Source: Guillardia theta CCMP2712
Taxonomy: Eukaryota; Protista; Cryptophyta
Assembly (NCBI RefSeq): GCF_000315625.1
Contig: NW_005434390.1
Coordinates: 1 to 33,506, forward strand
Reading direction: 5' to 3'
Length of the DNA stretch: 33,506 bases
The translations under genes and the position numbers were made by a program. The notes under the pieces were generated by a model. That model did no database searches. It saw only the letters and a program-made list of their open reading frames with translations, and was not told where the DNA came from. Shown in pieces: positions 20,671-27,197 of this stretch. Within the stretch, counting starts at the first letter, position 1. Every line of letters begins with the position of its first letter.

Positions 20671-23600
20671 ATGGACATTGAATCTCCACCAGAGGACAAC
20701 TCTGATGCCCCTCAAGACCCGATGAGATCGCTGGATGCCGAGCTTAGAGAACACTTCAAGTTGTTGTACATGCTCGAGCCTGGTGATCATCTCAACTCCA
20801 AGCTTGGTCTGCAAGACCTGTACAGGACGAGCCTCCTGACTGCTGTTTTCTGCCGTGAACCTCTCACTGCGTTGTATACACACTCTGCGTTTCAAATGAT
20901 TTCTGTCATTGCCGGAAGCTACCTCGTCATCCGAGCGTACCTGCGATCCTCGCAGTACCGCGATGATCAACATCGGATGGTGAAGGTCGACACGGTCTTG
21001 ATCCAGACTCCTTACCAGAGGAACCCAACATGGATCGACTTCAGCTTGGCAAGCTGTGCCTGGGAGGAGAACCTGCATCTCGTACTTGAGCTCGTACAGG
21101 GATTCGCAATCATCTTGTCCTCATTGTTCGCTCACTTCTGCATTACAAGAGCGCCGAGAAAGGTGAATGATGGAAACTCTACTCCTCCCTCTCCTTTCTG
21201 CTATTCCTCCTCCCTTCTCTCCCCCCCCCCCCCCCCGGCCTCCCTCTTCGTTCTCCTCTTACTCAATCCTCTCCTCCTGCGCCGCTCCTCCTCCTCCTCC
21301 TCCTCCTCCTCCTTTCATTTGTGTTCCCTTGACACCATGTTTGTTTTAGATCTTCGCGTTGGCTGGTTTGATTGTTGGACTTGGAAATCTGGTCCTATTC
21401 ATCGGGTCCGACGGAAGTTCTGCATACGTGGTGGCATACGAGTGCTTGACGACATTCTTTGTGGTGAGTGAAACTTTGTTTGAGCTTCAGATGACTTCTA
21501 ACCCAATGATGCAGTCCATCTTTGTATTTCCTTGTCCCATTCTCTTCATGGAAACTTTTGTGCTTGAGCTGATAGCGGCATCACTAAGTATCAGGATGAT
21601 TGCTGATGGTGTGAACAAGTCTATCAAAGTAGAAGTGCTGGTTGCCTTCGTCTTGTTCAGCCTGGCGTTGCTCCTGAAGGTTGCCCAGAAAGCCAAGGCA
21701 TCACAAGCAATGAAAGAAGACGCTGTCAAGTTTGACTCTGCATGGAGAGCGATGATGGAGACGTCAGCATCGCAATCTTTCCTTGAAGACACTGACAGGA
21801 TCTTGAAAGACTTCTTCGCGCTGTACCCGACCAAGTCGCTTCCCAACTGCAAGCATACCTTCATGATGCCAGAGTCTCTGGTGAAAGAGCCCTCGGCGGG
21901 CAAAGTGAGCCAGGCGACCTCGAGGAGCTCTAGAGTGCTTCCGATGGACAGCATGATCTCCCTGCCTATCAGCACCTTCACAGACTCTACTCCCTCCTTC
22001 CCTGTCCTCAACTTGGATCAACTTTACGCGAGGTCAGTCGTTGTGCTGCCGATGTTCTTGCGCAAAGTCGTGGCAGTAGGGAGAGATTGGAGAGGACACT
22101 GTTGCTACCAGCTTCCGGGGACGAGTGAGAAGCAGTACATGTTGTACAAGGACTTGGAATCGTCTCCTGAGGTGCTTCGAAGTGTTTACTTGTCGAGCAT
22201 CAAGAACGTCCAACGGTCGGTGAAGAAGACCTTGACTTTCCTGCATGGCGACGTGTCGCAGTTGACCGACATTGTGAGACAGAGCATCCTCTTCGACAAC
22301 TTGCAAGATCTCAATGGAGCTCTACAGCAACTCATCGACGACGGCGAGATTGAGGTCGTCTTCATCAGAAACCGACTGAGCGGCGGCGGCGGCCAGCGGG
22401 ATATTACAATCAACATCTGCTTCACCCACGACTTGGCGGTCAGGACCAACCTGCTGGGCCACGTCTGTGAACTTCGCCTCGGCCTCAAAGAGATCCACTC
22501 CAACATATCCCCAGCAGACCACGAGCTGTTCCTCGAGAGGAAGCTAGTGCTGCAGACGCGCAGGATAGAGCGAGGGAGGGGGAACAGCTCGCTGGTGATG
22601 ATGCGGCAGGGGAGAAAGTTGCTGCTCGCTTTCTCCTCCTTCCTTCGGATGAAGATGCGCAACGAGAGCTCAGGCGCAGACGCCGTGGCACCGGGCCAGC
22701 TCCTCATGACAGTCAAGGGGATGATGCCGGGGGGGCTGCTGGACTTTATGATCCACTCGGCGGAGGCCGGGGTGGAGGAGGCGGAGACTGCGAGTGTTAT
22801 GTTTTCATCCCGCCCAGTGACCAATGTGATTCGAAAGCGTCTGTTTCAGATGATCCTTGTGGTGCTTGGGGTTGCGATGATAGCGAGTTGGATGCTCAAC
22901 GACAGCATTCCCATCAGGATGCTCTGGAGGGATCGGCAATACGATGTCTTCCACGCTCGTATCACTGTGTTGCAAGTCAGGTCTCCCGATGCTGAGACAG
23001 CGTCCTTGGGTAGAGTGAGTTTCTTCAAGGACTGTCAACGGTTCACTCCAACCTTGGTGGCGTCAAATGGAACTCGATTCTTCTTCACCTTCAGCAGCCA
23101 AGTGGTTGTGAATGGATGGGAGTTCTACACAGATTCAGCAGAATCCTCCTTCGATCATGATCCGATGTCTCTGGAGATGCACGTGAGCGATCAGATCGTG
23201 AAGCTAGATCCGACTGATCTCACTGAATCTCAGTGGAGGTTGATTACCAAGTTCGATTGTGCTCTCAGTGCCAAGACCGAGCTCTGCCGATCTTCGGTCG
23301 CCAACGTCACTGCAACGCGGGGTCAACGGTACTACTTCGATCTGAGGGACTCATGGCAGACGGTAGGGGAGATAATCAACATGGGGCTACGACTCTTGGC
23401 AACCTTCGGAACTGCTGCGCTGGCTAGCATGGGCTTCATCTTTCTGGGAAAGACAACCTTGGCAAGCTCCTTCCATGGAGCAGGAGTCATAGACATAGTA
23501 ATCGCTGCCTTCACTCCCCTTGACGCACTCGGCTTCCTTCAGTCGATCCTCTGGGGGCTCTTGGAGCTGGTCTACGGGCTGATCGTACAGTTCAGGGAGG

Positions 23601-24646
23601 AGCATACTATCTCCTTCATGCCCGTGTACTGCCTGTGCGGGTCCGCCATGAACCTGCTGATGACAAACTTGAGGCAAGCTCGCTTCAGCCTCACCCCCAA
23701 CACCCTCAGGTTGGACTTGACCTTCCCCTTCTACGCCTGGGCCCTCTTCTACCTCTGGCGCCAGTACCTTCTCTTCAAGTCCTTCAGCAAGATCCGGGCA
23801 GACCTCGCACAGTACCAGCAGCTCTGGCAGCAGCTGGAGAGAGACGCTGCCGCCTTAGCTGAGCTCGGCGACTCGCTCGCCAAGATTGACCTGCAGCCTC
23901 CAGCAGCTCAATGCCTCTCTCGCGCCTCCGCTGCCGCAACTTTGCCCAGCACGCCGATAGGGCTTGAGAGCAGCAACAAGAGTAGAGAGGAGAGGACAAG
24001 CCTGATGCGACGAATATCGGGAAGAGCAGGGATGATGTCGCGAGCACAGGCCATCCCTCGGCAGCTGAGAGTGGGCTCGCTCGAGCAGCTGTACGCTCAA
24101 GCTCTCGTCATCCTGCCCGCCTTCTTCGACAAGATCAAGGAGCTCGGGTCGAGATGCGACTGCCTGTTTCTGCTGGAGGAGGAGGCGGAGGGAGGGCCGC
24201 GCTACGTGTCTTGGGCTGAGACCGAGGAGGATCCCTTGCTGAAGTCGCTCATCCGACGACCAGCCCTCAAGGCCGCCACCCGATCCATCGCCAAGGTCCT
24301 TCGATCGTACAAGGGCGACGCGTCGCGGCTGACCGACATCGTGCGGTATGCTCTCGTGTTCGAGGACCTGGGAAAGCTCAGGAGGGCTGTGGAGGTGGCG
24401 AGGGAGGACCCGGAGATTCTGATTGCTAGGATGAAGAACCGGTTTGACCCCTCCTACAACTCGATGAAGACAGGTGGGTATCGCGACATCTGCTTGAACA
24501 TTCGCATCAGCAACGACTACACGCGCAGGAACTTGGTCGACTCACACATCTGCGAGCTGCAGCTGGTGCTCAAGAGCTTCATGGAGCTGAGAACTGACAA
24601 GGGACACAAGAACTACCGCGTGTTCCGCGACCAGCGATGCGAGTAG
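20671..24646 (+). CDS. ~1262-aa membrane protein: 6TM - RelA/SpoT-like domain - 6TM (with extracellular domain) - RelA/SpoT-like domain
   Basis: Exon 20671-21162, intron 21163-21349 (GT..AG, phase 0), exon 21350-24646. Domain 1 (~22009-22557): IKNVQRSVKKTL...DVSQLTDIVRQSILFD...IRNRL..GGQRDITINI...HVCELRL. Domain 2 (~24077-24643): LKAATRSIAKVLRSYKGDASRLTDIVRYALVFED...MKNRFD...TGGYRDICLNI...HICELQL. Six hydrophobic segments precede each domain. Confidence 0.85.
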
Positions 24647-24839
24647 ATGAAGTCATCCTGCTGAGATAGCTCCTTCTCTGTACAGTATAATGAATAACTT
24701 GATAGCTTTTTACTCTGTGCTGCACTACGGTAGCTAACCATTCTTTCAGTCACGGTGCTCACTTGGGCCCCTGCAGACTCTAAGGTGCAAAACCGTACCT
24801 GTCGGGAAGAGACTGGCACAGTCATACTAGTAGCCTGTC

Positions 24840-25590
24840 ACTGTCTACCCTGACTCAAAGTTTCAAGTGACTGTGAGGGTTTTGTTTTGACTCACTGTCA
24901 CAGTGACTCAGCCACGGTCACTGACTGGCAGTGTATTGAAACTTGGTCCAGTGGACGTGACTCAGTCGGACCGTGACGACCGTCACCGCCGCGCACGGAC
25001 GGTTCCGGGCGGCCGAGTACCGTCGTGCGGCCCTCGCCGCCCTCCGACGGGGGCCCGCCCCTCGGGCCCGGAGTCCGGCGGGCCGGCGGCCGCCCGGGCC
25101 GCCCCCCGCGCCGGCCGGCCGCGGCGTCGGACTCCCGGAGGTCCCGCGACGCGGGGGCCCGGCGGAAGTTACTGTGACGGGGCCGACCGTAGGCCCCCCC
25201 GGCCCGGCCGCCGCCGCGGGGCGCCCTGTGCCAGGCCGCTCAGCGGCGGCGGGAGTCACGGTGCCACGGTGGGCCCGGGCGCCCGAGTCGAGTCCGAGTC
25301 CGTCGGAGGCGGCTCGCGGAGTCGGGTCACCGGGTCACTGAGATCATGCCGGGCCGGCGGCGGCCGGCCCCCGGTGCCATCATTGCCGGTCCGACCGGGT
25401 GACTCTGTGATCATCCGAGTCGGCACTACTAGAAGTTCATCAGTGTGCTGTCATACGTTAACTTTGTCAGTTAACTTATTAAGACGGTGGTGAAGTTTGA
25501 CAGTCCGGGGCTGCCGCAGTGCCTCAGCCGATCAGTTAACCGGTCATTAGTACCGGTACTGCCAGTACCGGTACTAATGATTGACCGGGT
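24840..25590. other. GC-rich palindrome-dense intergenic island
   Basis: Multiple TGACTCA, AAAGTTTCAAGT, GTTAAC, (A)GTACCGGTACT palindromes, and dense CCGG/GGCC. Confidence 0.7.
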
Positions 25591-25811
25591 CAATGGTCAA
25601 ACCTGCTGCTGGAAGACGGTGGGGTGGGGTAGAGCCCGACCGCGTCCACTGGCCCCCAGCAGAGGGTCACGTGGTGCCGGAGAGGGGTGGGGTGGTACCC
25701 CGACCTTACGAGGGGCGGCTTGGCACGGTGGGTCCATGGGGTCAGACAGGGGGGTATAGGGGGCCGGGGGGGAGGTGTGATAGGGGTAGGCGATCAGGTG
25801 AACAAACCAGC

Positions 25812-27197
25812 ATGAGAGCTGTGGCAATGGCAGGAAGAGTTGAAGCCCCAGCGCTGATCACGCTGCTTGTGATCGGGGGATGGACAATGCAGACACATTG
25901 CGCAGATTACTTCATCTGCGGGGGCTGCTCCTTCACTGTATCAGATGAAGGTCTGCTTCAAAGGACGGGAAGCTGCTCGTTGGGTGCCGCTGGGGCTAAC
26001 TGTATGTTGATGTATGCTGGGATTGTTGACATTGAAGAAGGAACTTTCGATGGACTTCATGACATGACTTATCTGGACCTTTCACAGAACCAGCTGACAA
26101 ACATTCCAGGAGGATTGTTCGATGGTCTGAGTGGTCTACAATATCTTTCGCTCTCCTACAATCAGTTGTCAAGCATAGCACCGGATGCATTTTCAAACTG
26201 CACTCAGCTGTCTTATGTCGACGTTAGTTTCAATCAGCTGACGTGTTATTATGCTTCTTGGCCACTAGAAATTATGTCATTAGATACGATTGCAGCAGGA
26301 AAGTTGTGCCAGAATATGACCACCAACCTGACCGGGAATGTGACCACCAACCTGATCGCATGCTATCCGCATATCAGTGTTGAGTTGGATTCGGCAAACC
26401 TCCCATCGGACATGGCAGGGCAATACTGTGAGGCCTTTGACTGCAAAAGGGATGAAGGAGGTTCCTGGTTTGGCGGAGTTGATTACGCGCACTGCTTTCG
26501 CAAGAACGACGACAAAACCTGGAAAATATGGAACACGGGGTGTGGGTGGGAGATAGGACAGTATATCAGTGTTAATGCCCCGTCTCCTGGAATTTCATGG
26601 CAGCGGTATGCTCGTACCTACAGCGGATACTGCCACCCAATCCCCCCCTCACAGCTAGACATTCGTGCTCTTGTCAACACTTCGACCTTTTACGACTCAC
26701 TCGGAAATATGCTTGTTGGCGTTCACTCAGTCCTGGTGTTATCCCCTCACAATTCCAGCGCTGATGCCGTCAGTGCTGTGGAGGACACAACTGATACCTT
26801 CAACGCGTCCAGTGCTGTCAATTCCAGCTCTGCAGACAGTTCCCCGCTCCCGTTGGTCGATACTGCTTTGCTATCCTTCCCGGAGTGTGTTGAGCGAAGG
26901 GACTGGGGAGCGATGCTGGAGCTGATGAACAACGGAACAGCGGCAACGGGAGGGCTGGGGCTGTTGATGGAGCCTCCTCTGGAATCCTGGATTTGCATCC
27001 AAGAGCACCCTTGCCTCCAGAGGGTCGCTGACGCCCAGCCAAGCGATATGATGTGCTTCGTGTACCACGAGGTCGATCGAGTCTTCCTGCCATGGTGAGG
27101 ACCTATCAATGGCCGTTGGCTTCCGACTGAGACTCGCAGCGCTGACTGTTTCCTCTGCAGGAGCATCAATTCTCTTCTGAAGCTCGTGATGCCTTGA
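25812..27197 (+). CDS. Secreted/extracellular leucine-rich repeat protein
   Basis: Signal-peptide-like N-terminus (ALITLLVIGGW..THCA), Cys cap, 3-4 typical 24-aa LRRs (LDLSQNQLTNIPGGLFDGLSGLQYLSLSYNQLSSIAPDAFSNCTQLSYVDVSFNQLTC), then a Cys/Trp-rich domain and a Ser-rich linker. Probable intron 27095-27160 (CTGAC branch point) gives the ending WSINSLLKLVMP*. Confidence 0.8.

Follow-up and report, generated by a model that had tools for sequence, protein, structure and literature searches.

A membrane-integral tandem protein with RelA/SpoT-like domains, from an expanded gene family of the cryptophyte Guillardia theta

In eukaryotes, enzymes of the RelA/SpoT homologue (RSH) superfamily and the alarmones they produce are regarded as a plastid matter. 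The gene described here is located on the forward strand of contig NW_005434390.1 of the cryptophyte Guillardia theta CCMP2712 (assembly GCF_000315625.1), at positions 20671-24646 of a 33,506-nt stretch that was analyzed as a whole and is referred to as the window, and its 1245-residue product combines two membrane regions with two soluble domains of predicted RelA/SpoT synthetase fold. The RSH1-4 and CRSH enzymes of plants and algae belong to the same superfamily, but they are plastid-targeted and carry an HD hydrolase together with TGS/ACT or EF-hand domains; no Pfam domain of the HD hydrolase, TGS/ACT or EF-hand type was found in the window protein, which therefore lacks the make-up of a long RSH. 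Surveys of algal RSH genes describe plastid long RSH enzymes only (PMC6881373), and a 2022 review notes the absence of any report of (p)ppApp from plants or algae (PMC10107265). Unplaced, synthetase-only eukaryotic small alarmone synthetases (SAS), some of them from diatoms, were designated 'divRel' in 2011, with no mention of transmembrane (TM) domains or of a tandem architecture (PMC3153485).

The closest structural counterparts are bacterial. RelP/SAS2 and RelQ/SAS1 (PDB 6fgk, 6ex0 and 5dec) share the fold of the window domains (VIA Z 11.0-11.5, Foldseek E ~1e-5), but they are soluble, single-domain homotetramers, whereas the window protein is membrane-integral, tandem and eukaryotic, has an Arg in place of the Ser of the ATP-binding motif (KxxxRxxxK) and an Arg at +3 from the catalytic Asp, and finds no match in Pfam. 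Tas1 (Apk1; PDB 6ox6) is a (p)ppApp synthetase toxin of Pseudomonas aeruginosa, delivered by type VI secretion and accompanied by an immunity protein. It has K-x3-R-x3-K, YKGD and D-x2-R in common with the window family (profile E 3e-4, a local match of 43 aa), but it is a secreted bacterial toxin, whereas the window gene is a eukaryotic nuclear gene without any delivery or immunity context. In its layout, the window protein resembles the class III TM adenylyl cyclases, which present the same pseudo-duplicated 6TM-C1-6TM-C2 order, in which one catalytic copy is canonical and the other degenerate; the catalytic folds are nonetheless unrelated, with no Pfam match to the class III cyclase family (PF00211) in the window protein, and an ectodomain inserted after TM1 further distinguishes the latter. 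The active site of RSH enzymes is contained in one domain, and a shared site of the C1-C2 type is not needed. SaEAS, an exported bacterial alarmone synthetase (PDB 8vx3), also adopts the RSH fold (Foldseek E 1.2e-4, VIA Z 9.8), but is secreted, soluble and bacterial rather than membrane-integral and eukaryotic. Exported enzymes of this type place RSH function outside the classical cytoplasmic stringent response, and they were added in 2025 to a set of characterized RSH enzymes that had until then been nearly all bacterial and cytoplasmic (PMC12691689).

A search of the freely accessible literature found no description of a membrane-integral, tandem or receptor-like eukaryotic RSH, nor of a cryptophyte expansion. 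The remark in an initial sequence-only reading of the window that no such system had been characterized is thus borne out for the protein as a whole; the domain assignment is partly known, as three G. theta paralogues are already named 'RelA/SpoT domain-containing protein' in UniRef and divRel had been described. The catalytic fold is a known one, and it is the membrane-integral, tandem, receptor-like arrangement and its expansion in cryptophytes that appear to be new.

The two RelA/SpoT-like soluble domains

The soluble domains, each of about 190 aa, had been read as RelA/SpoT-like, and profile and model comparisons support a synthetase fold of the RelA/SpoT type in which both catalytic residues, Asp and Glu, are present. 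An exhaustive HMMER search with domain 2 returned 1821 cluster representatives at E<=1e-3, and the family profile represents an alignment of 106 sequences. Across these 106 aligned domains K82, D104, R107, R153 and E177 are invariant, and R86, K90, R93, Y95, K137-N138-R139, G151-Y152, H174, Q179, H194 and Y197 are nearly so. When PDB sequences were searched with a single sequence (phmmer) no match was obtained; with the family profile there were two matches only, Tas1 and RelP/YwaC (E 5.6e-3), the alignment to the latter spanning K..K, the catalytic Asp, KxY..GYR, ExQ and H..Y. In this alignment, D104 and E177, which are present in both window domains, coincide with the D of HDIAGVR and the E of EIQIRT; we take them to be the equivalents of RelSeq D264, the Mg-binding Asp, and of RelSeq E323, the catalytic Glu of ExQ. 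The AlphaFold2 (AF2) model of domain 2 reaches a predicted local distance difference test (pLDDT) score of 92.3. The best 50 Foldseek matches to this model are all RSH synthetases (top E 1.4e-5), VIA assigns Z scores of 11.5 to SAS2 (root-mean-square deviation, rmsd, of 2.9 over 149 aa), 11.0 to SAS1, 10.8 to RelP, 10.7 to Tas1 and 10.6 to CapRel, and CapRel is joined by FaRel2 among the structural matches. ESM-Atlas searches by feature and by shape likewise indicate an RSH.

The domains had been expected to match both RSH structures and the Pfam family RelA_SpoT (PF04607). The first expectation held; as to the second, PF04607 matches neither window domain even at E 10, and none of the ~51 G. 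theta family loci at E 0.01. One relative (P0198; family profile E 9.8e-54) does pass the gathering score of this Pfam family, with 27.8 versus 27 bits. Matches to Lactamase_B_5 (E 0.17) and MgtC_SapB_C (E 0.18) were at chance level and were discarded. In the ATP-binding motif RxKxxxSxxxK both Lys residues (K82, K90) are kept, no Arg is found at -2 and an Arg occupies the Ser position, as in Tas1; relative to classical RSH enzymes, both RxKxxxS and the spacing of DxxGxR are altered in this Tas1-like manner. All motif strings on which the initial assignment had been based are present in the sequence, including LDQLYA (22013) and LEQLYA (24080), LTDIVR (22262 and 24329), RNR/KNR, GGQRD/GGYRD and HVCEL/HICEL, besides the two lead-ins.

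The sequence-only reading had treated the two synthetase domains as equals, a view that the residue comparison does not uphold. Domain 2 of the window protein has all 23 of 23 family-conserved positions, including D104 (LTDIVR), G151-Y152-R153 and E177 (CELQ), and essentially all of them are kept in domain 2 across 23 two-module proteins. In domain 1 of these same proteins K82, K90, D104, R107, H174 and E177 are kept, with variation at R93, Y95, R135, R139, Y152, D154 and Q179. The window domain 1 follows this pattern: it keeps K82, R86, K90, D104, R107, H174 and E177, and presents the changes R93T, Y95L, R135F, Y152Q, Q179R and Y197F. The G-loop Tyr of RSH enzymes stacks on the acceptor base, and Y152 is aligned with the G-loop Tyr of RelP. 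This Tyr is found in the GGYRD of window domain 2 and in 21 of the 23 second domains, and is replaced in window domain 1 (GGQRD). To judge from these residues, domain 1 is probably a regulatory, weakened or differently specific copy.

Duplication and membrane architecture

The protein is a true internal duplication, far beyond chance, of one ancestral module. Between its soluble domains identity is 31% (BLASTP E 6e-29), and the membrane profiles of modules 1 and 2 align with an hhalign probability of 99.0% (E 2.7e-18) over 248 columns covering TM2-TM6 and the juxtamembrane helix, in agreement with the two homologous modules proposed from the sequence. The similarity claimed for the two lead-ins is less firm: both strings are present, but the lead-in and TM1 segments align only weakly with each other (E 0.002). 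The adenylyl-cyclase-like alternation of six TM helices and a soluble domain, proposed in the same reading with about six hydrophobic helices per module, is reproduced by the AF2 model of module 2 and by hydropathy and homology (hhalign) for module 1. The module-2 model, based on 33 aligned sequences (pLDDT 84.7, predicted template modeling score 0.76), places in order a lead-in helix, TM1, an all-beta domain of ~135 residues, five TM helices, a linker and the C-terminal domain, and its TM6 runs on into the conserved juxtamembrane segment as a single long helix (Table 1). Both juxtamembrane strings named earlier, EDAVKFDSAW and ADLAQYQQLW (23798-23827), are located here, and the D, Y and W of this segment are each at least 90% conserved among 61 single-module relatives. 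Module 1 also has six hydrophobic helices, with a loop of just ~40 residues between TM1 and TM2; in at least one paralogue (P0007) the beta domain is found in module 1 as well.

The beta domain bears a weak likeness to the beta-sandwich of galactanase BT0290 (VIA Z 7.2, rmsd 2.3 over 90 aa), and it contains two sequons, NGT and NVT, together with a pair of Cys columns that 58-70% of family members conserve. Both RSH domains would face the cytosol, given the lack of a signal peptide, the even number of helices per module and a reaction that requires ATP. The beta-sandwich of module 2 would then face the extracytosolic side, a location that its sequons and conserved Cys pair fit. No kinship of the TM bundle with G-protein-coupled receptors or rhodopsins is assigned, because the VIA matches concerned are of a generic 7TM-like kind and their Z scores (TMEM45A 9.8, LYCHOS 8.5, rhodopsins 6-7.6) lie below the noise level of the tool for helical bundles. 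A predicted complex of domains 1 and 2 scored 0.00, which amounts to no verdict and bears neither way on a pseudo-heterodimer.

Family, proposed function and alternatives

The window gene is not unique. A search of the 87.1-Mb, 669-contig G. theta assembly with the domain profile (E<=1e-5) produced 106 matches, of which the ~84 strong ones group into ~51 loci, and ~31 of these loci encode two domains ~2.1 kb apart. A further ~22 partial matches (E 1e-7 to 1e-11) cover only profile positions ~42-120 and fall in open reading frames (ORFs) of 800-1080 aa, as at C4:1071678-1071887, C37:146496-151204 and C100:16381-24837; on sequence grounds these may be intron-split members or a further divergent subfamily. 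Tandem or inverted clusters on contigs C30 (477-529 kb), C206 (46-57 kb), C1 (834-843 kb), C62 (107-114 kb) and C13 (133-140 kb) indicate recent local duplication. Mean pairwise identity within the family is 41% for the RSH domain, 20% for the ectodomain and 16% for the TM region, and this far stronger conservation of the RSH domain corresponds to the pattern of a receptor family, in which diversified inputs feed a common output. In a Pfam scan, no extra fused domains were detected in the 61 single-module relatives. The closest database relative of the window protein is G. theta GUITHDRAFT_104621 (63% identity), followed by a Hanusia phi protein; another place in the same assembly encodes GUITHDRAFT_104621 itself, with 100% identity, and the window gene is therefore its paralogue. 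The named relatives among the matches listed are all from cryptophytes (Guillardia, Hanusia, Rhodomonas salina, R. abbreviata, Hemiselmis andersenii and Cryptomonas paramecium); the range may be wider, as ESM-Atlas neighbours bear ciliate and diatom labels.

We consider it probable that the window protein acts as a receptor-enzyme in the membrane, with domain 2 as a predicted ATP-dependent pyrophosphokinase on the cytosolic side that yields a 3'-pyrophosphorylated purine nucleotide, and with domain 1 as a copy of regulatory role or altered specificity. Each module comprises a bundle of six TM helices, the conserved juxtamembrane helix, a flexible linker and a domain of the RelA/SpoT superfamily resembling small alarmone synthetases. 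Domain 2 would take the beta,gamma-pyrophosphate group from ATP and attach it to a purine nucleotide at the 3'-OH, with AMP and (p)ppApp or (p)ppGpp as products. Domain 1 keeps the metal-binding and catalytic carboxylates, but the G-loop Tyr and a number of basic residues are missing from it. Nucleotide synthesis would be controlled by an outside cue that TM6 and the juxtamembrane helix pass on. The receptor-enzyme is suggested by the combination of a variable ectodomain and bundle with a strongly conserved output domain; that the window protein itself acts as a receptor, and has a ligand, we infer only. A nucleotide messenger, (p)ppGpp or (p)ppApp among the candidates, had been proposed from the start. 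The motifs are nearer to the (p)ppApp synthetase Tas1 than to classical (p)ppGpp synthetases, and this Tas1-likeness makes adenine nucleotides a serious candidate acceptor, although sequence cannot decide.

Several results weigh against this interpretation. Pfam, NCBIfam and PADLOC scans of the whole protein and of each domain returned nothing meaningful and, with RxKxxxS and the DxxGxR spacing altered, the sequence does not reveal whether the domains are active or which acceptor they use. The positive-inside count was uninformative, the loops being very short and giving no clear signal, and neither Foldseek, run with the whole module-2 model, nor VIA identified a confident structural relative of the TM bundle. 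A Pfam HD_4 search detected no stand-alone small alarmone hydrolase able to end the signal in the G. theta assembly.

The last of these results would also fit an immune or conflict effector, in which a virus, a bacterium or a non-self cue turns on a toxic RSH activity that leads to growth arrest or cell death, either by Tas1-like depletion of ATP via (p)ppApp or by pyrophosphorylation of tRNA 3' ends in the manner of CapRel and FaRel2. The best sequence match of the family is indeed a toxin, Tas1, with K-x3-R-x3-K..YKGD..D-x2-R in common, the structural matches include CapRel and FaRel2, and paralogues give a weak PADLOC match to PDC-S33 (E 0.002). Moreover, a large and partly tandem family (~51 loci; C30, C206, C1, C62), with variable ectodomains on a conserved output domain, is typical of recognition families. 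We nevertheless regard such an effector as rather unlikely: there is no evident antitoxin or immunity partner, domain 2 conserves the G-loop Tyr of enzymes acting on nucleotide acceptors, and the gene is expressed in transcriptomes from ordinary cultures.

It is very improbable that the protein is a pseudoenzyme or scaffold whose RSH-like domains bind nucleotides, for instance to sense ATP or an alarmone, while its real activity is that of a 12-TM transporter or channel. Such a role would account for the loss of several family-conserved residues in domain 1, for the altered classical RSH motifs with no Pfam match and for a 6+6 TM layout that is frequent in transporters, but domain 2 is the most conserved part of the protein and is intact, including the Mg-binding Asp and the catalytic Glu, in nearly all of the 23 two-module proteins, and neither Foldseek nor VIA matched a transporter fold. 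Least probable of all is a synthetase in a plastid or periplastid membrane that supplies (p)ppGpp to the known plastid stringent-like pathway, as might be supposed because the characterized plant and algal RSH enzymes all act in plastids (PMC6881373, PMC10107265) and most named relatives come from plastid-bearing cryptophytes, since the acidic N-terminus lacks the signal peptide needed for import into cryptophyte plastids, canonical long RSH genes exist separately in G. theta, and one relative belongs to the non-photosynthetic Cryptomonas paramecium, though a leucoplast is retained there. Canonical HD_4 and RelA_SpoT Pfam matches were found at two other G. theta loci only, presumably the long plastid-type RSH genes, and for this reason we take the receptor-enzyme proposed here to be separate from the plastid RSH pathway.

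Gene structure, neighbourhood and implications

The window gene is a transcribed, spliced nuclear gene of G. theta, in keeping with its earlier description as eukaryotic. Its start (ATG 20671) and stop (24646) had been placed correctly from the sequence, without mention of the two GT..AG introns that lie between them (Table 1). The longest open frame comprises 1095 codons (21359-24646), and the upstream exon starts at the ATG. The first intron was predicted from the sequence and a paralogue, and the second from residues missing in homologues, before transcript-like contigs were considered. One 3909-nt contig from a 2014 run (X1) extends over 20581-24691 with exactly two GT..AG joints, of 187 and 51 nt, and a 2019 run from a separate study (X2) yields identical joints; a 2011 run (X11) contains the unspliced genomic form, and one matching read was found in the ~6% of a raw RNA run (X15) that was examined. 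Intron 2 is in frame, so that readthrough of the unspliced form adds 17 spurious residues, which are absent from a paralogue (P0001) and from a Hanusia protein (P0002). The product of exon 1 has an acidic N-terminus without a signal-peptide-like hydrophobic start, followed by the lead-in AVFCREPLTALY and by TM1 and TM2 of module 1.

The loose 5' end of the X1 and X2 contigs aligns to window position 20269. The spliced leader (20269-20670) includes a short upstream ORF, from ATGGCG... to TGA, with in-frame stops before 20671, which could confer translational regulation. One genomic-type X11 contig (depth 5) has an extra T after 22022 that would shift the frame in domain 1; it is absent from the transcript-like X1 and X2 contigs and probably reflects an error in the assembly or the reads, or else a rare allele.

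Table 1. Features of the window gene and its product (window coordinates).
Feature	Position	Strand	Basis and remarks
Upstream untranslated region (UTR) exon	end near 20298	+	From loose contig end at 20269; implies 5' UTR intron ~20299-20580
5' UTR exon	20581-20670	+	X1 and X2 transcript-like contigs start here, 5' end loose
Coding exon 1, aa 1-164	20671-21162	+	ORF, splice joint, hydropathy
Module-1 TM1	20881-20943	+	Hydropathy
Module-1 TM2	21070-21138	+	Hydropathy
Intron 1, 187 nt, GT..AG, CT-rich	21163-21349	+	Joint 21160->21348 (cut +2), X1 and X2 contigs; sequence
Coding exon 2, module-1 TM3 and beginning of TM4	21350-21463	+	Splice joints, hydropathy
Module-1 TM4-TM6, across intron 2	21419-21691	+	Hydropathy; hhalign to module-2 TM2-TM6
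Intron 2, 51 nt, GT..AG	21464-21514	+	Joint 21462->21514 (cut +1), X1 and X2 contigs
Coding exon 3, to stop codon	21515-24646	+	ORF, transcript contigs; transcript extends to ~24691
Juxtamembrane helix 1, EDAVKFDSAW, family D..F/Y..W motif	21716-21745	+	Sequence
RSH-synthetase-like domain 1, diverged	22001-22537	+	Profile E 2.5e-43; residue table; BLASTP vs domain 2
Module-2 lead-in helix and TM1	22814-22897	+	AF2 helices 14-20, 22-41
Module-2 beta-sandwich between TM1 and TM2	22940-23341	+	AF2 strands 56-189
Module-2 TM2-TM6	23354-23779	+	AF2 helices 194-218, 222-246, 251-273, 275-301, 313-355
Juxtamembrane helix 2, continuous with TM6, includes ADLAQYQQLW	23780-23881	+	AF2, hydropathy
Disordered Ser/Arg-rich linker, includes RRIS	23936-24058	+	pLDDT <50, module aa 388-428
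RSH-synthetase-like domain 2, canonical for family	24068-24640	+	Profile E 2e-67; AF2; Foldseek; VIA; residue table

A second, more distant family member is located at 11115-12800 (+) of the window. Its recognizable elements are hydrophobic helices, a helix of juxtamembrane type, DLQQLY and the segment KSVARAIQKTVRSYGRDASCLTDIVR, which is 47% identical to domain 2 over 43 aa (E 2e-6); GGYRD follows near 12760, past an apparent intron, and the gene enters a gap of N at ~12890-13400. Just upstream of it, at 10007-11068 (+), lies an ORF of 353 aa with no Pfam match and no usable ESM-Atlas neighbour. Downstream of the window gene, at 25581-27098 (+), an ORF product that contains leucine-rich repeats (LRR_8, E 4.6e-24) and has a C-terminal part rich in Cys and sequons may be another surface or receptor-like protein. 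Long tracts of low complexity occur at 13571-14514 (-) and 21207-21321; they include runs of Leu, Ser, Pro and Cys, repeats of ALPCP and, within intron 1, (CCT)n, and were excluded as repeats when reads were mapped.

Domain 2 is small and confidently modeled, and its catalytic residues are obvious, which makes its enzymology directly testable. The architecture would provide a second, independent case, besides the adenylyl cyclases, of two membrane bundles combined with two catalytic domains, one of them degenerate. Approximately 50 transcribed membrane RSH genes would point to a new eukaryotic nucleotide-messenger pathway, or to a new immune effector akin to Tas1 and other toxic small alarmone synthetases (toxSAS). 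We put forward as a tentative possibility that cryptophytes possess a cytosolic alarmone-type messenger system, based on (p)ppApp, (p)ppGpp or a new pyrophosphorylated nucleotide and driven by ~50 receptor-type membrane RSH synthetases with diversified ectodomains. If true, this system would be the eukaryotic counterpart of receptor cyclases, built on a nucleotide chemistry that in eukaryotes has so far been documented for plastids alone.

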